Source of the DNA: Cyanophora paradoxa CCMP329
Taxonomy: Eukaryota > Plantae > Glaucophyta
Direction: 5' to 3'
DNA length: 64,000 bases
NCBI GenBank assembly: GCA_004431415.1
Contig: QPMI01000066.1
Coordinates: 485,154 to 549,153 of the forward strand
Under the pieces are notes generated by a model. That model was not told the origin of the DNA. It made no database searches and saw only the letters and a list, made by a program, of their open reading frames with translations. Below are positions 709 to 48,200 of this stretch, piece after piece. A program made the position numbers and the translations under genes. The number at the start of each line of letters is the position of its first letter. The stretch's first letter is position 1.

Positions 709-3197
709 TGCCGCTTATATGTCTCAGTCTTGTCGCTTGAAGCTGTGGATGACAGCACTGCGCGCGCCGTACGATCAGCATGCGAGCTCCCGGAGTCCAT
801 AAGACTCCCCGGGATTCAATCTATAGCTATATATCTAGACCCAGCTGCAGAGCTCGAGCAGCCAGCCGCTGATCATGAGCTGCAGGAGGTCTAGCTACAG
901 ATCTAGATGTGGCCATGGCGCCGGCCTTCGCCGCGAGCTCAAGTGGGCCCGGTGGGCCGAGAGCATTGACGCTCCGCGAGGGTAGTTTAGAGCGGGACAT
1001 CGGCGCACCGGCCGCGGGACTCGGGGAATCGAACTTCGGAAGGACTCTGCTCGATATCCTGCGAGGGACCTCTGCACGCGCACACTGTGACTGTGTGACA
1101 GGCTGCACCTACGTATACGCCTGCAGCGTCAGCTGGACGGGCCGGACTCTTCAAGGCTTGTGAGCTCGAGCGAGCGCGGCGTCGGCGCGCGCGCGTCGCC
1201 AGCCTGAGCAGCTGCCGCAGTGCACTGCGGCACTGCGGCAGGGCCCCGGGCCCGCGGGCCCAGCTGCAGGACTGTGCACGTGATCGGCGGCTAAGAGCTT
1301 TCCGACATCGACCTTAAAAAAGCTTCGGACCGTCGGACTGACGAGTCCTGCGCTGCAGTTTGCAGGCTGCAGGCTGCGCATGCAGGACCAATGGGCCATT
1401 GCAGGCTAGCGCTGCATGCGCAAGCTTAAGCTTAAGCGCCGGCTGCACTAGTATAGTCTAGTACTAGAGCTGAGTACTGCCGCTGCAGCGCTGGCTCAGC
1501 GGCTGATCGATATCGAAGCATTATTATCGATCACGTTTGAGATTAATTGCAAGTAACTTAGTAACTTTTTAACAGAGGGGAAAGAGCTGCGCATCAGCAG
1601 CGCATGTAGTACTGAGTACTAGCTACCGGCGTTACAGTGCGTCACTGAGTCACGGCGTAACTACGGTTACCGTAGACTCCGTAGTACGCGCGTCGATTCC
1701 CGACTCCCGACTCCCGAGTCACGGACCGTCGGACTCCCGCCGGGCCGGGAGTCCGGGATCCCGGGATTCCCGGCCCAGATTCCCGGCCCGCCGGCGGGAC
1801 CGGGCCTTCCCGGCCCGGGGCCGCGGATCCGCAATGATCATGATCATCGGATTACGCATCGATATCCCGGCGGAGCAGCGCCGGACTCCCGGGAGCTGCG
1901 CATGCAGAAGAGCTTCATAGAGGTTTGGGAGGCGGCTAAGAGGGTTTCGGAGGCTAGGTCACGAGTTTTTTTCAAACTCGAAAAGGTAACTTGAAACTTG
2001 AAAACAGTTTTTCTCTTTTTCTCTGGGTAGCAGCCTCTCAGAGTCTGCGCATGCGCATGCCCTCTGGCACTTCCGCCAGCCTGCCAGTGGCTGCCGCAGT
2101 GCCACTGGCTGCCAGCATGCAGCCTCAGAAGCAGGTCCTTGCCGGCGGCTGCCCTACTAGGCTAGGACCCTAGCTAGGCCTGGCCGCCGGGGTTTAGCTG
2201 CCCTAGCATTTTTCAATTTTTCTTTCTGGACAGCCGCTGAGGCTGCGCACTGCGGCATGGCGCCGCGCGCATGCATGTGCGCGCGGCTGAGCCTGCCAGC
2301 TGCAGCAGGCTAGGGCTGAGCGTGCTGCTGGCGTCGCGAATTTCGGAAGCCACCGGCATCGCGTCGATGATCGCGATCGGGCCCACTGATCAGAATTTTC
2401 TATAGATCTCGTTCGGGAGCAGGTAATCGGCGACGAACTTTCGGAACTCGATCGGTTGGACGATCGCGAAGCGCCCCGATATCGATCGCGAGCCGTCGCA
2501 GCCGATGATCGATGACCGCTCCGCGCGCCTGCGGGAGACGCGCGGCATGCGCAAACACGACCGGCGCCCTCGATCGCGAGCTCGCATATATATGCACGCA
2601 CATGCACGGCGGCGCGACCCCGGGGCGCCTGCGGACGGGGAATCTAGATCTATCTCGAAATGAAGGCGAAAACGAAGGCGAAAACGAAGGGACGCTTGTG
2701 CACCGAGGCCGGTTGAATTCAAAATTCAAAACAGCGATACGTTGAGGCTGGCTGAATTCCTCGAAGTGCTGCTAGCTATAGCGCTCTCTCGAAATCAATT
2801 ATAGCCTCTAGCTTCAAATTTTCAGTCAACGGCAAGCGTGTGCTTAAGCGCTTCCCCCCTCGCCCTCCCCCCCCCCTCCCCCCCCTCCCCCCCTCCCCCC
2901 CTCCCCCCTGCCCTAGGCCTCCCGCGGGGGGGGGCGATGTCCCCCCCCCCCCCCCCCCCCGCCCCCCCCCCCCCCCCCCCCCCCCCCCCTTCTCGCTAAT
3001 CATGAGCCGCGGGCTGCCCCTTGCAGGCTCTTCCCATTAATATTGCCCCAACCTGCAGCTGCTCCAATATTTATGGACCCAGTTTAAAATAGAATTTCAC
3101 ACGCTCATATATTTACTGACCGCTCATATATTTACTGACCGATTCGAGAACTAATGGAACACCGACGTGGATCGGTCGATATCCTAAAAAATCAGGC

Positions 3198-15461: not shown

Positions 15462-18400
15462 CTAGGGGTCGTGGGCGTGGGCCCTGAGCTCGAGACCCGA
15501 GGTCGAGGCGGCGCGCCCGCGGCCGGGGCCGGCGGCGATCTCGAGGGCGGCCACGGACTCGCGCCAGAGCGCCCGCCGCTCCCGCTCGATGTCGCGCGTC
15601 GCCGCCATGGACAGCGCCCTGCGCAGGCGCGTTAAACGTTCTTCGTCAAGCAGACGCCGCAGATCTAGAGAGAAAGCGAAGAGACGGAGCGGAACGCATG
15701 CGCACAGGAAGCAGGCGGAGGTGGTGAGGAGGCGGGTGCCGCGGTCGATGACGGCGAAGACGGCGGCGAAGGAGGCGAGCCAGCAGGCGAGCCAGCCCAG
15801 CGCGAAGGCGAAGCGGACCCGCAGCGTCACCAGGCACAGCGGCACCGAGTTCGACAGCAGCACCAGCGCCCACCTGCGAAACCCGCATCAGGCGATTTTT
15901 GTGTAGCTTATACAATTAATATTAAATATCGTGAAGCTCAATGAGCCCTTAAAGCAAAAGCGGGCACCAGAGCGCCGTGTCCTCGCGGGAGGGGTGTAGC
16001 CTGCCCCCCGGGAGCTGCCCGAGCAGCGCCATGCAGCTCGCGCTCGCAGCGACCGCCGCCAGCGTCACCGCCCACTGCGCACGCGCGCGCGGGCCTCAGG
16101 GGGGTCCGGCGGGCGGGCCGGCCGCGGGGGGAGCTCGCGCTCGAGCTCGAGGCCTAGCTATAGGCCTACGGGCCCGCCCGTGCACCTGGTGGACCCACTT
16201 CCGGGCGTAGAAGCCCTCCCAGAGGCGCCGCGGGACCGCCGAGAGTAGGACGGCCGCCCCGGGTACGACTCCCCCGATGAGGATGCCGATGACCTGCAGG
16301 GGGAAATGTGGATGGGGGGGGGAGGGGAAGGGGGGGGGTAGGCCCTGCCCACCTTGGAGGCCTCGCCAGGGTTCGAAGCCTTGCGGGACCGGTTCCAGAG
16401 GATGACGGAGGACTGCGGAGAGGGGGAATTTGGAGAGGCTGATCGATATCGAGCGCTAGCGGATCGAATAGATCTACAGCGCTGAACAAGGAGCACAGCC
16501 TCGAATTATAAATTAAATAGAGACCAAGCGTTATATCTAGACCTATATCAGGACATCGACTACTGTACTAGTACTCTAACCGTTGAACGCCATGCAATGA
16601 TCGGATCGGCGCGCGCACGACAGTGAATGCAGTGAGAAGGGCCGAGGCGTAGAGAAGCGTCCGCCGCCGCGCGTACCGCACAGACCACTGCGGCGAAGAT
16701 TGAGTCCGAATTGACGAAAATCAACGCGATATCGACATCGATGTATATGGAGGGATGAAATCGAAAGACGGGGGGGCCTGGGGGGGTACGGGGGGCCGGG
16801 GGGGGTACGGGCCACGCGGAACCCCTCCTCCTCGGTCGGGTCGGGGAACGCGAGCGTGACGCGGCGCAGCAGGCGCCGCCCCCGCGACTCCATCTCCGTC
16901 GGGCCGCCCCCGCCCCCGCCCCCGCCCTCGCCCCCGCGATCGGCCGCGGGCCTCTCGAGATCGAGCTCGTCAGCACCGGCGTCAACGCCAACGCTCCGGG
17001 GAGCCAGGGGCCCGTCGACGTCGACGTCGACAACACCGTTCTCGACCTCTCCGCGCGTGCGCGTCCCCTTGGGGACGGCGGCGTCGGGCTCCGAGGGGGG
17101 GAGGCCTAGGGGAGGCAGGGGGAAGACTTGGCGGAGGCCAAGGGGAGGGGGCTCCAGCTCGACGGGGACAGCGAGCGAGCCAGTGCGCCGCATGCGGCCC
17201 CGCGCGAAGCGCGCCGCGTACCGCTGGGCGTCCTGCGAAGACGTCGACGCGCACGAGTCAGAAGGATTCCTTCGAAAATAACCGTTGAACTGCAGCTGGT
17301 GATTACATATGCAAGATCTAGAGGGGTATCGACGGCGGGCGCGCCTCGCGTTCGCGGAGGTAGCTCGTGGCGATAGCGATGACGCACGACATTCCCAGAG
17401 AGATGCCGGTCTGAGAGAGGGGGGGGGAATGGGGGGTGAGATGAAGGGGGGAGGCGGGGGGGGGGGAGGGGGGGGGGGGCGGGAAGGGGTGGGGAGACAT
17501 ATTCTTGACCGGCCTAGAAGACCCCGGGCCCGGGGTGCCCTGCCCCCCCCCCCCTCCCCTCCTCCCCCCCTCCGCCCCCCGCCGCCCCTCCCCCCTCCGC
17601 CCCCTCCGCCCCCCCCCTCCTCCCCCCCCCCCCCACCCCCCCACCCCCCCGCCCCAGTGCGCACCGCGATGCCCACGTCGACCTTAAAAGGATTTGGGGT
17701 GGCGTTCACCTGCCGGTACCAGTGCCCCGTCAGCTCGAGCGGGGCCGGGGCCGGCCCTGCGCCCGCGGGCCGGCCGCGGCCGCGGGGCCGAAGATGACAG
17801 TAGATCAAAGATTTGTAGATATAGCTAGATGATCTAGATGACAAGGCTGTACATGTGAATGTGAGGGGGCACCTTGAGGGGAAGATAGTAGGCATACATA
17901 GCCACCGCAACAACGACCTGAGGGCGGGGCGGGGCGCTGGTCATGGGGCCGGGAGGGCCGGGCAAGTTCTAAAGGCCGAGCCTCGGAGAATCGAAGCGGT
18001 GGGGGTACCTGAATCCGCCAGCGCGAGGCGCCCGCTACGCCGATGCCCCAGAACCAGATGGGAGGGCCAGGCTGCGGGGCGGGGACCGGATCCGGAGTTA
18101 GCTATAGGGAGCGGAGGCGATCGCGAGGGGAGCTGATAAGAACCGATGTCTGGGCGAATTCGAAGCGCTAGGAGCGAAGGCACGCACCTCGTCCGAAATA
18201 TCGCCGGAGAGGTGCCCGGGCCTGCGCGTGCGGCGCATGCGGCGGTTGGGGTACTTGTGGCGCCGGCGGCGGGCGGCGGGCGAATCCGGAGATCTAGAGA
18301 GGGCGAGTTCGAAGGCTCGTAGCGCACCCGTCCCACCAGTCCCCTGCGGGCCAGAGGAAGGAGAGGAAGAGCATGTAGGAGGTGACGACTGTTTACATTG

Positions 18401-26520: not shown

Positions 26521-28211
26521 GATTCGGGAGTGCTCCTGCCAGTCGCGGTCGTACGCCGGGACGCCGACTCCGCTGCTGGCCGGGCGAGCCCTCTCCACGT
26601 CCACGCGTATCATGCCAGCAATTAAAGCGCAACGGTTCTTCCTCGCCGCCGCCGCGCACCCGGTGACCGGCACCGCGAAGAGCAGCAGGCTGCCAGCAGC
26701 AGTTTGGTGCTTCCCGGTCCGAATCCCGGAGTCCGCTGCTGCACAGCCGGCGCGGCGCCGTGCCACGTGTGCTACCGCGGCCGGTACTCTTGTGCAACCT
26801 CATGATCATCTTCTTAACTGATTTTGGTACCGGGCCGGGCGTACCTCCAATCTCCGCGATCCGAGAGTCCGATGGTCGGCCCGAGAGTCCGAGCTCGAGT
26901 CTCCGAGTCCGGATCCGCTGAGCAGACGGCCCTGCGGATGCCTTCGGAAAGCACGACCGGTTCCCGGCCCAGCTGTGAAAGTAGTTCATAGCGGTTGGGC
27001 GGGTAGGGGGGGGAGGGGGCCCGGGGGGAGGGCCGCGGGGCTGGGTGGGGGGCGGTGGGTATGGCGCATCAGGGGCATCCGGGTCCCCGGGCTGGAGGAG
27101 GGCGGCGGCATGTGGTGGGCGGCCTTGCAATTGGTGCGGGGCAGCTGCAGCGGCCCCCCGGGGCCGGGGCCGGGGCGGAGCTGGCGGCGGCCGGGGCAGG
27201 GACCGGGGGGCCGGGGGAGCTTGGGGGGTAGGGGGAGCCCGGGGAGCCCGGGGGGGGCCGGGGGAGCCCGGGAAGCCCGGGGCCGGGGCCGGGGGGAGCC
27301 CGGGGGGGCCAGGTCGGAACTGTTGGAGCTCGCTGTGAACTTGAACCGGTTTCGCCACGTGAAGCCTTTCGCAGCCGCTCGAGCTCGCGAATCGCGATCG
27401 GCGCCGGGCGCCGGCCGCGGCCCGCTCCGCACTGAGTCCGCAGCCGCTGACTCGGTGAGCGCGCGCTGCCGCGGCACCGGCGCCGCACGGCGCGCGCGCG
27501 CGCGACTTGCAATTGCCGGCGTTGACGTCGACTCAGTGCGCCGCGCGGCAGCGCCGCGGGCACTCGACGTCGGGCCGCGGGCGCTCTGCAGCTGGTGGCC
27601 GGGGCGCAGATCTAGAGAAAGTCCGAGCGGGGGGGAGATCTAGAGGGGCAGACTCTGAGAGGGAGAGAGGGGGGAGAGGGGGGGGGGGGGGGCGCTAGCC
27701 CCTCCACGTGCGTGCACCCCCCTCCGGGATCCTCCCCCCCTCTGCCCCTCTCCCTCCCCCACCTTCCTATACGTGTGTTCGAATCCACTGGGCCACGCTT
27801 TTCACTCGCGCACTGCAGCTGCGGCAAATCGCGTGAGTTGCACTTCTGAAAATTCAGAGCCGGACCGAAGACGCGGGGAGGGGCCGGGGTACAGCACAAA
27901 AAAGGCGGAAAGGGGCCGGGGTCAGGCCGGGTACAGACACGCCCCAAGGGGCAGGTGCAGGCCGATGGCAAGGGGCCGAGGGCCGGGGTCCAGGTGCAGG
28001 ACGCGGGCGCCACGGAGCCGGGGGGGAAGGGGCGAAGGCGGGGAAGAGGGAATGCGAGGGTACAGCGAGAAGCGAGGATGCAACGAGGCAGGGTACATCC
28101 AGAGGGAGGATTCGACGTACAGTCCGGTCCCTGCAGAAGAATCGGAATCTCAGTAGAGCCCTTGTCTTCGAAGGGGCGGCCGCGGGGGGCAGCGGGGGCC
28201 CCGAGCGCACC

Positions 28212-36528: not shown

Positions 36529-37227
36529 CTACATCTCGAGCCGGTGGCCCCAGTTGAACCAGAACTGCGCGCTTGCGGACGCGGCGGGCGCCGCCGCCTC
36601 CGCGGCGACGGAAGCCGCGCCCAGCAGAGCGCCGCAGGCCATTCCCGCGGCCCTCTCGAGCGTGGGGCCCAGCGCGTAGCCCACGGAGACGCCGAAGGCC
36701 GCCGCGGCGAGGGCCACTGCGCCCAGGCTCGTCCGCGCCGGTTCGCGGGGCGAGGACGCCTCCTCTGCCTTCACTGTCGCCTGCTCTTCCGCCAGAGCCA
36801 CGGCCGCTCGCAGGGCTTGAGAGAGGGCGTAATTCCTGCGCACGGCGCCGCGGCCGTTTGAATTCTTGCTGGAAAGAGGAGGCGGGAGCTGCGGCGGACC
36901 TCGGGAGGTCGTCGATATCCGCGACGAAGAGTTGCAGCTTGCGGCGGTCCAATGGGCACTGCAGGGCGATGCAGTCGCGCCTCCACACCCAACCAACGCA
37001 TGCTGCCGCGCAGGCGCGGCGTCACGAATGCAGGGAGAACCCGGAGAAGGCGCACGAGCGCGGCCGGGCGGCGCACCTCTTGTCTGCTCGAGTTGGGCTA
37101 TGCAGGCGCGGCAGAAGCTGTGACCACAAGGCAGGACGCGCGGATCCTCATAGATGCAGAGGCAGAGAGCGCACTCGACGCCGCAGCTCAGCGAGTCGTG
37201 CGCATCGCTGGAAGCATCCGCTTTCAT
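36529..37227 (-). CDS. C3HC4-type RING E3 ligase with hydrophobic C-terminal anchor
   Basis: CALCLCIYEDPRVLPCGHSFCRAC..CPLDR..LPRNYAL after removing two GT-AG introns. Hydrophobic tail LGAVALAAAAFGVSVGYALG. Confidence 0.8.
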   Translation of the reverse strand: MKADASSDAHDSLSCGVECALCLCIYEDPRVLPCGHSFCRACIAQLEQTRGAPPGRARAPSPGSPCIRDAAPARQHALVGCGGATASPCSAHWTAASCNSSSRISTTSRGPPQLPPPLSSKNSNGRGAVRRNYALSQALRAAVALAEEQATVKAEEASSPREPARTSLGAVALAAAAFGVSVGYALGPTLERAAGMACGALLGAASVAAEAAAPAASASAQFWFNWGHRLEM

Positions 37228-37351
37228 CGCCGCGAGCGCGAAGTGCGCCGCATGCGCCGTTCGTCCCGCAGCTTGGAGAATCCAGTACCCTCCGAACGAG
37301 CTGCGGCGCTGCTGCGCCGCTGCTGCGGCGGCCGCGCTGCGTCGCTGCGAC

Positions 37352-38666
37352 ATGTTCAGTGAAGATTCTGCCCCCTTCCGCTTCAACTTCGGTGGCGATG
37401 CGCCGGCCGAGGTGCGCCGGCCCGCAGCTGGCCACGCCGCGAGTGCCAGCCAGCGCGCCGCAGGAAGCTGGGTCCCCGGAGCCGCCGCCGCCGGCGACTG
37501 CGGACGCTCCGATGATCGATCTCGGCGTGGACCAGCTCGTGCGCTCGCGCGATCCGCCGCGTGGGCCGCCGCTCTATGCATCCGGACCTCAATCGCGGCG
37601 GTGCGCAGGACCTGGACGAATGCGGGCATTGCGAGACCGAAGAGCAGCGGCTACCTTGCTCCTCCATCAAGCGCGTCCGCCCCTGCGCGGTGCACGGCAC
37701 CGCGCCCGGCGCGCCGTCGAACAGCGACCTCGTGCCGCGCGTCTACGAGGGCGGCTTCAAGCTCTGGGAGTGCGCGACCGACCTCGCCGGCTTCGTGGAG
37801 GAGACCGCGGCCTCGTGGAAGGGGCTGAGGGTGGCCGAGGCGCGCGCGCGCCCCGCCCCCGACCCGCGCACGCCGGTCCTTCTTCTCACTTGCGCGCGCC
37901 TCTTCGAATGCGCAGCTCGGCTGCGGGCACGGGATCCCCGGGCTCGTCGCCCTCCGCCACGGCGCCGCCTGCGTCCACTTCCAGGACTACGTGCGCCCCT
38001 TTCGCTATCTAAGCTCTCTAATTGGAGTCTTATAAACTTTAATATGTACTGCAGAACGCGGAGGTGCTGGCGCGCGTCACTGCGCGGAACTGCGCGCTCG
38101 CCTGCGGCGGCCGCGAGGCGCTGCGCTCCGCCGTCGCCGCTGGCGTCCTCCGCTTCCTCGCCGGCGGCTGGGCCAGCGCCGCCGTGAGTCCGTACCCCCC
38201 TTCGATTCGTCGTACCCCTGACGGAGGGCCAGGAGCGGCTGGGACCGGCTGGGGAGGGCCAGCAGTACGACGTGATCCTGGTGCGCCCCACCGCCGCCCA
38301 CGCTGTACCCCTCGATCGCGCTTTTTTGAATCGGTGTACCCCAGACGAGCGAGACGATCTACTCCCGAGAGTCGATGGCGCGGCTGCTCGATCTCATCGC
38401 CGCGACGCTGCGCCCCAAGACCGGCTTCGCATATCCTTCGCCCCGCCTCTTCTACCCACTTTCTCCCCCCTCTCCCTTCCTTTCCTTGACCGGCAGGGAG
38501 GGGTACGCTCGTGGCGGCGAAGCGGCACTACTTCGGCGTGGGGGGCGGCGTTCTCGCCTTCGAGGCGCTCGTGGAGCGGGACGGGCGCTTGACGTGCGGG
38601 CGCCTGAAAGTCTATGAGGACGGGTCCTCACAGACCCGCGACCTCCTTCGCCTCGTCTGGCGGTAG
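37352..38666 (+). CDS. METTL18: Histidine protein methyltransferase 1 homolog (HPM1/METTL18)
   Basis: FRFNF N-terminus, DLVPRVYEGGFKLWECATDL, ELGCGHGIPG, VHFQDYN, YDVILTSETIY and AAKRHYFGVGGG. Confidence 0.92.
38431..38506 (+). other. U12-type (minor spliceosome) AT-AC intron
   Basis: 5' site ATATCCTT at 38431, branch site TTCCTTGAC at 38482-38490 and terminal AC at 38505-38506. Removal restores the frame KTGFA-LVAAKRHYFGVGGG. Confidence 0.88.
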
Positions 38667-38785
38667 ATTGCCAAGTTGCTCTAATGGTAAATTAAAAATA
38701 GCATAGTCCAGTCCAGTGGCAGCTCTAGATCTCTGGGTTCGTTATTCGAATTGAATTGAATTCGATTTCACAACGGCGGGCTCTC

Positions 38786-41013
38786 TTATGAGACGATACA
38801 CTCCTTCCTGTCCTTCCCGTCCTTCCCCTTCTCCCTATTCCTCTTGCCGAAGGTAATGGCAAAAGGCCGGGCGCCACCGGAGGGGCGGCGGGACGCAGAG
38901 GGGGCGGGCGGCCCGGAGGAGGGGGCGGGCAGGAGGGCTGGGTCGCCGGGGGTGGGGGTGGTGTTGGGGGCGGGCGCGGCGACGGACGGGAGGGGTACGG
39001 GGCCGGGGAGCTGGCTGGTGGGCGTGGGCAGGGCGCAACCCGGCGCGTACGTCACCTGACGCAGACAGAAGAATCAGACTCGGACGCGCTCGGGCTCAGG
39101 TGAGGAGGGGGGGGGGGCAAGCGGGCACGGCGTCGGGGGGTATGGGGAAGAGGCCCTCGACGGAGAGGTAGCGCTCGCCGGTGTCGTAGTTGAACGTGAG
39201 GACCGTGGCGCCGTCCGGGATCTCGGGGAGCTTCTTGGCGACGGCGGCCAGGGAGGCGCCGGAGGAGATCCCTGCGCGCCGAAAGCAGCGCGCTGAGCGG
39301 GGGAGGAAGGGTGGTACGGCATTAGTCGGGCAAAAAGGGGGGTACCGATGAGGATGCCCTCCTGCATGGCGGAGCGGCGCGCCCACTCGAACGCCTCCTC
39401 AGCGTCCACCTGAATGATCCCGTCCAGGAGCTGCAGGGGGTACATGGTTTAGGCCGGCGGAGGGGAGAACCGGAGGGGGGTACGGCGCGCCTCGGTCTGG
39501 AGGATCTTGGGGATAAAGCCGGCGCCGATGCCCTGCAGCTTATGCGGCGCCGGCTTGCCTGCGCCGGCGTGAGCGCGAAGGCAGCGTACCCCTGAAGAGG
39601 CGGGGGGGGGGGGCGGACTTGCCTCCGGAGAGGACGGGGGCGGCCGAGGGTTCGACCCCGAACACCTTCATCTTCTGCGGGTACGGAGTTCGACCGGAAG
39701 GAAGCGGGGCTGGAGCGGGGGTGGGGATACCGCACCGGGAACTTCTGCTTCAGGACGCGTGCGCACCCCGTGATGTGTCCCCCCGTCCCGACGCCCGTGA
39801 TCTTAGGGGAGGGGGCGGAGATAAGCGGGCCCGCGGGGCTGAATAACAAGATGAAGTAGGGCAAAGGAGGGCGCGCCATGAAATCGATCCCGTCCGGAAA
39901 GTCGCTGAGGAGCTCTGCGCTTCTTCTCATCAGAGGGAGGGGCGGAGGGAGGAAGGACGAGTTCGCGGCGCGAGAAACAAAGAAAGGGACGGGCCCTGGG
40001 CGGTGGTCTCGGCGTGGGCTTCCACGTTTGACGCGTTGTCGAACTGGCGGGCGGGAACCTCCGGTGAGAAAGGCAGCGGAAAAGGCAGTGGATAGGCATT
40101 AGACTTGTGTTGGACTAGACCAGTAAAGGCGGCGGATAGATACTAGGCCTGTGTAGGGCGCATCGCACCTGGCCCGGGATCCACGCCGAGGGCCGCGCGC
40201 TCGCCAGCTGCCGCGCCCGCTGGATCGCCCTGCAAGCCCGCGAGCGTGAGGGCGCGGGCGCGGGCGCGGGCGCGGGGACGGGCCGCGGGCGCCGCCCGCC
40301 TGCCGCCCCACCGAGAGCTAAGCAGCTTGAAACGTTAAGCCAGCCGCGCCCCCGGTCATGCCGCGGTCGGAGAGATAGTCCAAGGTGGCCTAGCCTTAAC
40401 TCTACCGCCCCACCTAAGCCACCTTCGGCTATCTCGCCGCGCACCCGGTCATGCCTCGGTCACGGGGCGTGAGCTCGATGTGGGCGCCGTACGCGAGCAT
40501 GATGCGCCGTCGCTCCAGAGACATCGACTCCGGCATCACCAGAGTAAGCTGAGCGGAGGTTAGCAGGGACGCGCCTTCGTACTTGGCGGGGACGCGCCTT
40601 GTACTTCTTGACAGCGCAGACCATGGCGAGCCCGATGCCCGTGTTTCCCGACGTGGGCTCGATGATCTGGCGGCGGCAAGGCGTGAGCGAGGGCAGCGCG
40701 GGGCGGGCGAGGGCAGCTCGGGGCGGGCGGGCGGGCGCGCCTCGGAGACGCCCGGCTTGAGCGTGCCCCGTGCCTCCGCGTCCTCAATCATCTTCAGCGC
40801 GACCCGGTCCTTGATGGATGCGCACGGGTTCTGTCGCTCCAGCTTCACGAACACGTTGACCTGCACGCGGCGCGAGTCGGCGAGGGCCGGCTGCGGGCTC
40901 GGCGGCGGGAAGTGGTCGGGGGCGGCGACCTTGCGGTCCGCAGGGAAGAGCGACCTGCACCGCACGACCGGCGTTTTGCCGATGCAATCGAGGATGCTTT
41001 CAACTGGCGCCAT
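38786..41013 (-). CDS. cysK: Cysteine synthase A / O-acetylserine(thiol)lyase, 13 exons, last exon Pro-rich and ending in CaaX
   Basis: [23 protein letters not shown] (PLP lysine), [46 protein letters not shown] and DTGERYLS. Without the last intron the stop is at 39096. Confidence 0.93.
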
Positions 41014-45241: not shown

Positions 45242-48200
45242 CTACCGCATAGGGGATACCGCGATCTTGAGTTCGACGTACGCCTCCGGCAGCACAGCCC
45301 CCAGGTCCGCGCTCTGCGGCGCGCGGGGGTTCGAATCCGCGGCGTGCGGTTTCGAGGGCGCGCATGAACGTACCTGGAGGCGGAACTGCTCGTGCCAGCT
45401 GCCGCCCTGGCCCTGGGCGTACCCCGCGAGGGAGACGCGGCCCTCGGCCACGTGGGCGAAGCTGCCGGCCGCCGTCTTCGCGAAGATCCCGACGGTGAGG
45501 AGGGCCAGCTCGACGGGGGGTACGAGGGTGAAGGTCCGTGTGGCGTTGAAGTAGGGTCGCTCGGCGGGTCCCACCTCCCCCACGTCCCACGGCTCGCCCC
45601 CCGCCTGCTTCCCCGTACCCACGTGCACCTGCGCGCGGTACACCGCTGCGGAGAAAAGGGGGATTAGAGAAAGGGGGTACTTCGTTCGCGGGCGGCCGCG
45701 CCTTTGCCCTGCGGGAGCTTGCCGGCCTCCACGAGCGTCACGTTGAGCCGCCACTGCTTCGCGGACGGATCTGCGGGCGCCGCCACCGCCGCCGCCGCCG
45801 CGGAGCGCGCGGCCGGCGGCTCGGCCCGTGCCGCCGCCTGGCCCTCTGAGGCCCGCGCGGGTACGGGCACGAGAGGGCCGCCCGCCGGCAGGGGCGGCTC
45901 GGTCGGCCCGCGCTGCTGGGGTACGTCGCGCTGGAGGTCGCCCAGGGGTACCCGTCCTCGTCGTGGTACGTGACGATCGTCTTGGACCGCGGCAGCGCCG
46001 GCTCCGGCCCCGCGACGCCCCCGGCTGCGCCCCGGCTGCGCCTGCTCCGCCGCGTGCCAGTGCTCGCGCCTCGCGATCGTCCGCCTCGCGGGCCGCCCGC
46101 TGCCGCTGCTGCGCCTCTGCCTGCTCGAAGTACGAGGGGCCCTCCGGCGCCGGCGGCGGCGCCGGCTGCGCGGCGGCTGCCTTGCCGGAGGGCACAGCGG
46201 ACTTGGAGGGCACCCGCCGGGCGTCCACAAGGTGCCTGCAATAACAAAACAATCATTAAAAAGATAATCCCGATAACTGTTTAAAGGATGAAATAGCTTA
46301 CAGGTCGCCGAGGGCGTGGGCGTGCTCGAGGAGGGCACCGCCGCGCTCGGCGGCGGCGGCCGCCGCCGCCCGCCGCTGCTTCTCCTCGGCCGTGACCGGC
46401 GTGACCACCTGCGTCCCGCCCCGCAGCGGAGGCGCCGCGGCGTGCCCCGCGGCGCCCGCCTCCGACGCGCCGTAGTCGTAGTCGCTCCGCCGCGCCGCCG
46501 AAGCGGTCGGCTGCTTCGACTTTGCGCGCGGGCGCGAGCGGCTCCGCTCGGCGGCGCGCCCGCGCTCGGAGCGGTGCGGGCGGCTCTTCTTGCGGGGCGC
46601 GCGCCGGACGACGCGGACGACGGCGGGGGCGGCGAGGCCGCGGCCGCGCTCCGCGAGGGCCGCCAGCTGCTGCAGCTGCCGCGCCATCTGCTGCTCCCGA
46701 AGCTGCGGAACGCGATAAATAAATGAGCTCTAGAAAGGCTCTCTAGAGGACAGCTCGGGCTCTTACAAAGAAACCGGAAGAAAGCGGGAAGCAATGAATG
46801 AGCGAAGACGTTTGGAAAGAAAAGGGAAACTCATAAGCTAGTCATACAAAGAGCTAAACAAGCTTAGAGGAAAACCGGAAGAACTGGCTCTTAAAGGACA
46901 GCTCAGGCTCTTAGAAAGTATAGCAAGAAAGGGAGAACTCATAAGAAGCTAGTCTTATTAAGTGAGCTGAGTCTTATTATTAGTCCCTCACCTGCATGAT
47001 CGTCATGAGCTGCGCGTGCTGAGCCGAGTCCATGCGCGCCGCCATGCGCGCCAGCCGCTCCGCCGCGTCCGCCCCGCCCCGCCCCGTCGCGCTGGCGCCG
47101 TACATCGGCTGCGCCAGCGACGAGGGCGCGGGGTACGGCCCCTGCATCTGCATCTGCTGCATCTGCGTCTGCAGCGCCAGGGCGGCCGCTTCGGCTCGGG
47201 ATCGGCTGCTGCTCCTACGCTTCGCCTTCTTCTTCAGCTTCCGCTGCAGCTTCTCGGCGGCGGCCTCCCGCAGGCGCAGCGCCGAGGCGGGGGTCGTCCC
47301 GTAGGGCGCCCACTCGGGCGCTCCGGCGGCGACCGCGGCGGCGGCGGCGAGGGCGCGGCCGCGCTCGGAGCGCGAGGTCGAGGAGGCGGTGCGCGAGGAG
47401 GACGAGGCGCTCGTCGAAGAGGGCGAGGTGGAGCGGGACGAGGAGCCGTGCCGCCCGCCCCGCCGCCTCCGCGAGGAGCTCCCGTAGGGGTACCCCACCT
47501 CGGCGGCCACCTCCGCGGCCGCGAACGGGTTCCGAGCCATGCGGCGGGCGAGCCGCGCCTCGGCGCGGCGCAGCGCCCGCTCGCGCGCACGCAGCGCCCG
47601 CTCCCGCTCGTCCTCACCCTCGCTCCAGCTGCTGCTGCCGCTGCTCCGGCTCCGGCTGCGGCTGCGGCTCCGGGCGCGCCCACGGCTGTGGAGGTGGTGG
47701 CCGCGGTGGTGGTGCTGGCTGTGATGGTGCCGCCCGTGGCGCCCCTCCCGCTCGTGCCGCTCCCGCTCGCGCTCGGCGAGGCGCGCCGCCTCGCCCCTCT
47801 CGAGGCGGCCGCCGGGCTGCGACCCCGCCACGTGCAGCATGACGTCGTCCGCGTCCGTGAAGTGGTACAGCAGCCTGGGGGGGTATACGGTGAGGCCCGA
47901 TTGGGGGGGGAAGTCGGCTCAGATCACCTGAACTCGACCTCCATGGTGTCGGCGGGGACGCCGGGCCCGCGGGGCCGCCGTGCCGCGGCACCGGCGCCGC
48001 CCGTCTTGTGCGAGACGTCTGTGACGAAGTCGCACCGGTCGCACTGGCCCGTCGAGTCGACCGTGCCCTGCGCCGCCCGCTCGGTCAGGAGAGAAAGCGT
48101 ACCCCCCGCGACCTCCCAGGAGCCCCCCGTACCCGGAGGCACTTGGAGCACTGCCCGACCCACGCCTGTCGCCGCAGCGCCTCCGTGTCATCGATGTACC

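Follow-up and report, generated by a model that had tools for sequence, protein, structure and literature searches.

The METTL18/HPM1-type gene that we describe here in the GC-rich alga Cyanophora paradoxa contains a 76-nt AT-AC intron that is real and is spliced precisely from its mRNA, and its signals make it very probably a canonical U12-dependent intron, situated in the last-but-one codon block of the gene (Table 1). The original prediction had placed a U12-type AT-AC intron at 38431-38506, with both recognition motifs and a 16-nt tail, and had concluded that a minor spliceosome exists in this lineage. The sequence is exactly as it was described and the intron is spliced with canonical signals, but the novelty that this implied fails because minor introns of C. 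paradoxa have already been published (PMC10639083). The intron is a textbook example of its class, and that class had already been reported from this lineage. What is modestly new is the transcript proof for one C. paradoxa minor intron, its fully canonical signals, and a deep conservation of position, with a U12-type intron in the alga and an arthropod and a U2-type intron in two fungi, which offers an example of the long retention of a minor intron and of type conversion.

An AT-AC intron with canonical U12-type signals

The upstream exon ends in ACC GGC TTC GC (accggcttcgc), and the intron then opens with ATATCCTTCG at 38431. Toward the other end, TTTCCTTGAC stops at 38490 and is followed by the 16 nt CGGCAGGGAGGGGTAC, which carry the AC at 38505-38506, and the downstream exon starts at 38507 with G CTC GTG GCG GCG AAG CGG CAC TAC TTC GGC. 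Read across the AT-AC splice, the product is K-T-G-F-A/L-V-A-A-K-R-H-Y-F-G (a slash marks the splice junction throughout), so the spliced product predicted beforehand, G-F-A-L-V-A-A-K-R-H-Y-F-G, was read correctly, with the Ala codon split GC/G in phase 2. Retention of the intron would instead shift the frame, the HYFGVGGG motif would be gone, and a stop would follow.

Counting both strands, ATATCCTT has a single occurrence in the 64-kb window, by which we mean the whole stretch of DNA that was analyzed, and so has the wider RTATCCTT; taken alone this is unremarkable, the chance expectation being 0.44 and 0.99 per window, respectively. For the 5′ motif with a TCCTTRAC 30-300 nt downstream, composition-matched shuffles give an expectation of just 0.0055 per window. 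No second U12-like 5′ site paired with a suitable branch site was found in the 64-kb window, in agreement with the claim that this was the sole such intron there.

A U12-type branch point was taken as TCCTTRAC located ~10-26 nt ahead of the 3′ splice site; the candidate agrees with this consensus, and its presumed branch A at 38489 is 17 nt from the last intron base, 38506. The optimum commonly quoted for the branch-to-3′ distance of U12-type introns is 11-13 nt, so the spacing here is longer than optimal but inside the working range. The polypyrimidine tract is missing, as CGGCAGGGAGGGGTAC consists of 12 purines and 4 pyrimidines out of 16 nucleotides, and ATATCCTT is quite unlike the other six donors of the same gene. 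The intron thus shares with known U12-type AT-AC introns the 5′ site /ATATCCTT, a TCCTTRAC near the 3′ end, the lack of a polypyrimidine tract, and the terminal AC, and it resembles them as well in its non-zero phase, in being a rare singleton amid U2-type introns of a housekeeping gene, and in a position kept across very long distances. While the signals are identical, the intron is short at 76 nt, as are the other introns of this genome.

Table 1. Features of the METTL18/HPM1-type gene of C. paradoxa, its introns, and the introns found at the same site in relatives (slash, splice junction; C. paradoxa coordinates refer to the window)
Feature	Coordinates	Strand	Basis or details
METTL18/HPM1-like protein-histidine N-methyltransferase gene	37352..38666	+	Contig joints, phase bookkeeping, similarity
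Exons 1-4	37352-37411, 37464-37538, 37609-37839, 37916-37990	+	Contig joints
Exons 5-8	38055-38183, 38233-38280, 38345-38430, 38507-38666 (stop 38664-38666)	+	Contig joints
U2-type GC-AG intron, gag/GCGCGC...GCGCAG/ctc	37840..37915	+	Joint in X1, X5, and X18; 2-nt ambiguity resolved
U12-type AT-AC intron, 76 nt, phase 2, Ala codon split GC/G	38431..38506	+	Sequence and RNA-like contigs of X1 and X5
U12-type 5′ splice site, ATATCCTT	38431..38438	+	8/8 match to /[AG]TATCCTT
U12-type branch-point sequence, TCCTTGAC	38483..38490	+	Presumed branch A 38489
3′ terminal AC	38505..38506	+	RNA joint; removal of 76 nt gives an 864-nt CDS, divisible by three
Hypothetical in-frame GC-AG intron, 73 nt, G/GCTTCG...GGCAG	38424..38496	+	Sequence only; joint in 0/4 runs
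Amphibalanus amphitrite (barnacle, L002) U12-type GT-AG intron, ~1.8 kb	JAHNUP010001603.1, 9054-10878		Same Ala codon, phase 2
Podila horticola (L004) U2-type intron, GC/GTAAGT...TACTAAT...TAG/A TTG GTT			Identical site and phase
Blastocladiella emersonii (L007) U2-type intron, GC/GTACGT...TAG/T CTG GTT			Identical site and phase

The host gene is of the METTL18/HPM1 type

The coding sequence comprises eight exons that add up to 864 nt, or 287 codons plus the stop. Its six U2-type introns (37412-38344) measure 49-76 nt, are all in phase 0, and have acceptors that end in CAG, and the AT-AC intron alone is in phase 2 and has other signals. Their donors are G/GTGCGC in four cases, GTGAGT in one, and GCGCGC in one, the latter belonging to a GC-AG intron. 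The GC-rich donor G/GTGCGC used by most of these introns is itself unusual, and the GC-AG intron sits at E/LGCG, a position that is likewise interrupted in Podila (L004) and Calcarisporiella (L006).

By similarity, the gene is a METTL18/HPM1-type protein-histidine methyltransferase. The last exon resembles residues 240-279 of human METTL18 (histidine protein methyltransferase 1 homolog, PDB 4rfq_A) with an E value of 2.2e-4, exon 3 resembles the region of 4rfq_A around the YEGGxKxWEC motif, and the translated exons contain the motifs YEGGxKxWEC, LGCG, and AxKxxYFGVGGG. Exon 8 shares 54% identity with the closest relative found, which is encoded by a GC-rich eukaryote on an environmental metagenome contig (L001, Ga0315274_10013222, 1900-3160), and a search with the exon of this relative led to a family that bears the name protein-histidine N-methyltransferase / HPM1 and carries PF10294. 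The fit to the HPM1/METTL18 motif that had been proposed for the product is borne out by the matches to 4rfq_A and by the family of L001. The protein of the C. paradoxa gene itself was not among the 120 relatives listed in the family search, a Pfam search with five exon translations, which are pieces of 25-76 amino acids and too short for this purpose, gave no match, and neither did a PDB search with the 28 amino acids of exon 7. AT-AC introns defeat standard gene predictors, and for this reason the public model of the gene may be wrong.

The intron is removed from the transcript

Contigs of four runs from the same organism (X1, X5, X15, and X18) were compared with window positions 36800-39300. 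DNA runs of this organism date from 2012 and the RNA-like runs from 2019 onwards; the RNA-like nature was deduced from the splicing pattern, and the assembled contigs represent the main isoform only. In X1 and X5, which come from two studies, a contig of ~1 kb lacks seven segments of the METTL18-like gene, which is how a transcript assembly behaves. Six of these seven segments have GT-AG or GC-AG borders. The seventh is a skip of 76 nt from 38429 to 38506, in which 1 nt fits either side, allowing CA..TA or AT..AC as borders, and it equals the joint 38430^38507. The RNA junction from 38430 to 38507 that had been named as a check on the prediction is therefore found in the X1 and X5 contigs, within the 1-nt ambiguity. 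Contigs of X15 are DNA-like, with the entire stretch colinear with the genome and no such joints. In X18, one contig ends at 38422 and the next, preceded by three unmatched letters, resumes at 38506; such a break agrees with the AT-AC joint but not with the overlapping GC-AG alternative, which would keep 38497-38505.

Since the evidence consists of assembled contigs and the RNA nature of the runs was guessed, the 76-nt gap might be argued to reflect no splicing at all but a deletion allele or an artefact of assembly or reverse transcription. We give this almost no credence, as the identical joint appears in two studies, the six other introns are missing from those same contigs with GT-AG/GC-AG borders, both the frame and the conserved motif A-LVAAKxxYFGVGG are recovered by the gap, and the DNA-like X15 lacks the joint. 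Template switching in particular is disfavored because the single nucleotide at the joint does not amount to a direct repeat.

A GC-AG alternative is not used in the contigs

An overlapping in-frame GC-AG alternative with its acceptor at 38496 had also been pointed out, and it is indeed present in the sequence (38424-38496), together with the suggestion that the region could be a twintron-like U12/U2 switch. According to this proposal, the region would be spliced either as a U12-type AT-AC intron of 76 nt or as a U2-type GC-AG intron of 73 nt, and a regulated switch would yield two in-frame isoforms, ..TGFA-LVAAK and ..TGRGT-LVAAK. Either removal keeps the frame, a GC-AG intron is in use within the same gene (37840-37915), CTTTCCTTGACCGGCAG resembles a usable U2-type pyrimidine tract and acceptor, and the break of the X18 contigs at 38422/38506 could stem from a branching assembly graph. 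However, the GC-AG joint 38423^38497 was seen in none of the contigs of the four runs, although contigs show main isoforms and may miss a rare one, and the X18 contig restarts at 38506 and not at 38497. The GCTTCG donor is also unlike the U2 donors of the gene, G/GTGCGC and G/GCGCGC, that is, G/G[TC]GCGC.

The protein family points the same way. AT-AC splicing gives a product reading ..GFA-LVAAK, which keeps the Ala of the family, whereas the GC-AG splice gives ..GRGT-LVAAK, with Thr at that place. LVAAK is preceded by Ala in 55 of the 63 family members with a motif match, and by Thr in none of them. With no GC-AG joint in the RNA-like contigs, an atypical donor, and a Thr in place of the conserved Ala, the dual U12/U2 switch or twintron is unsupported, and we consider it very unlikely. 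The length from ETIY to LVAAK was tried as a further discriminator between the splices and gave no discrimination, being 23 residues for AT-AC, 24 for GC-AG, and 25 in L001.

The intron position is shared with a barnacle and two fungi

Annotated proteins of relatives were mapped exactly to their own genomic loci, and the comparison of intron positions in METTL18 orthologs that the original prediction had asked for revealed same-site introns in a barnacle, where the intron is U12-type, and in two fungi, where it is U2-type (Table 1). The barnacle gene reads ..GGC ACC GC/GTATCCTCGG...CGACCTTAAC, with 16 more nucleotides to CAG/T CTG GTG GCC GCC AAG. Its intron shares with that of C. paradoxa the Ala codon before LVAAK, phase 2, a U12-type 5′ site, here GTATCCTC, a CCTTAAC branch site, and a 17-nt spacing between the branch A and the 3′ end, but it differs in having GT-AG instead of AT-AC ends and a length of ~1.8 kb instead of 76 nt. 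The introns of Podila and Blastocladiella differ from the algal one in their GTAAGT or GTACGT donors, their TACTAAT-like or CTGAC-like branch sites, and the presence of a pyrimidine tract. These two fungal introns are of the U2 type, and they fit the known route of U12-to-U2 conversion.

No intron was found at the U12 site in shrew (L008, with an intronless coding region), Calcarisporiella, Ramicandelaber, Coccomyxa, or Sphaeroforma, nor in L001, which has a single upstream intron, or in two unlabelled contigs (L010 and L011). Sphaeroforma (L003, 2488-2785) and Coccomyxa (L009, 2162-2258) each carry a U2-type intron that follows ..IK, some ten codons upstream of the U12 site; these two introns seem to differ in phase and may represent independent gains or intron sliding.

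Because an intron at the same codon and in the same phase occurs in the barnacle and in two fungi, the position of the U12-site intron is old, and the site was probably U12-type ancestrally. The most likely history is that of an ancestral minor intron that predates the split between Archaeplastida and opisthokonts and was converted to U2-type or lost elsewhere. In the most economical order that we infer from these sequences, the alga and the arthropod would have kept the U12-type, two fungal lines would have switched to the U2-type, and the other lineages would have lost the intron. Two further introns of the window gene, at E/LGCG and QDY/N, are at positions common to fungi or barnacle, and since these positions are shared along with that of the U12-site intron, the METTL18 gene keeps an old exon-intron structure. 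Among the papers searched, none linked METTL18 with U12 introns or listed it among the genes with minor introns.

Proposed splicing by the minor spliceosome

The signals of the intron suggest how it would be recognized. In known systems, the U12-type 5′ splice site is read by U11 and U6atac. For the intron described here, the U11/U12 di-snRNP would recognize ATATCCTT and TCCTTGAC jointly across the 76 nt, the G in TCCTTGAC would pair with U12 as a G-U wobble, the A at 38489 would be the branch point, and U11 would be replaced by U6atac at the 5′ site. The 3′ site would be picked by its distance and its compatibility with the 5′ A, with the AC at 17 nt being taken; the CAG at 38494-38496, which follows the branch by just 7 nt, would be passed over. 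We infer that splicing of this intron depends on the minor spliceosome; precise excision combined with U12-type signals therefore argues for a working minor spliceosome in C. paradoxa. The 64-kb window itself holds no snRNA gene, minor ones included, detectable with Rfam at the gathering score and at E<=10, the sole matches being sub-threshold and miRNA-like, and no gene for a minor-specific protein lies within the window.

An AT-AC intron could also be removed by the major (U2-type) spliceosome, in which case it would have no bearing on the minor one. U2-type AT-AC introns do exist, and a few AT-AC introns in animals are spliced by the major spliceosome; to our knowledge, these come without the ATATCCTT and TCCTTRAC signals. 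Further in favor of this explanation, a survey of C. paradoxa failed to detect U12, U4atac, and U6atac (Larue & Roy 2023, PMC10639083). Against it, both U12 motifs are perfect and properly spaced in an intron with no pyrimidine tract, and identical U12 signals lie between the GT-AG ends of the orthologous intron in the barnacle, making removal by the major spliceosome extremely unlikely.

Relation to the known minor introns of C. paradoxa

Larue & Roy 2023 (NAR, PMC10639083) reported a set of 77 minor introns in C. paradoxa that they verified by comparative genomics, and with it the lineage-level conclusion is already in print. The same work found a significant match in C. paradoxa to U11 only and suggested that the minor machinery may be 'transformed'. 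For RBM48, a U12 splicing factor, 10.1101/341917 shows a homologue in C. paradoxa. Compared with a 'transformed' machinery, the signals of the intron described here are fully canonical, which argues for conserved U12- and U6atac-type recognition in C. paradoxa and suggests that its undetected U12 and U6atac may keep the usual recognition sequences. A tentative and rather doubtful extension of this idea is that canonical introns are spliced with U12, U4atac, and U6atac snRNAs that are too diverged or restructured for the standard Rfam models. If that were true, this intron, with its signals anchored by an orthologue, would be a clean reporter for finding and studying an altered machinery in a deep-branching Archaeplastida lineage.

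Other features of the window

The genome of C. paradoxa has been described as 67.6% GC, with dense genes and many short introns of 86 bp on average (PMC6704402), and the window agrees with this description, having 67.0% GC, dense genes, and introns of 49-76 nt. Upstream of the METTL18-like gene, a divergent neighbor is encoded on the minus strand at 36800-37310, with introns at 36836-36899 and 37003-37076. The RNA contig of this neighbor ends at ~37269 and the METTL18 contig starts at ~37301, leaving ~30 nt between the two 5′ regions and suggesting that they share a very compact bidirectional promoter, with the reservation that contigs cannot fix true transcript starts. Two GC-rich palindromic hairpins (17458-17569 and 27650-27767) produced many matches to miRNA-precursor models on both strands, the best at 36 bits against a gathering score of 96, and they are probably mere inverted repeats. 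An ORF on the minus strand at 46980-47918 has a very high GC3 and is of low complexity.
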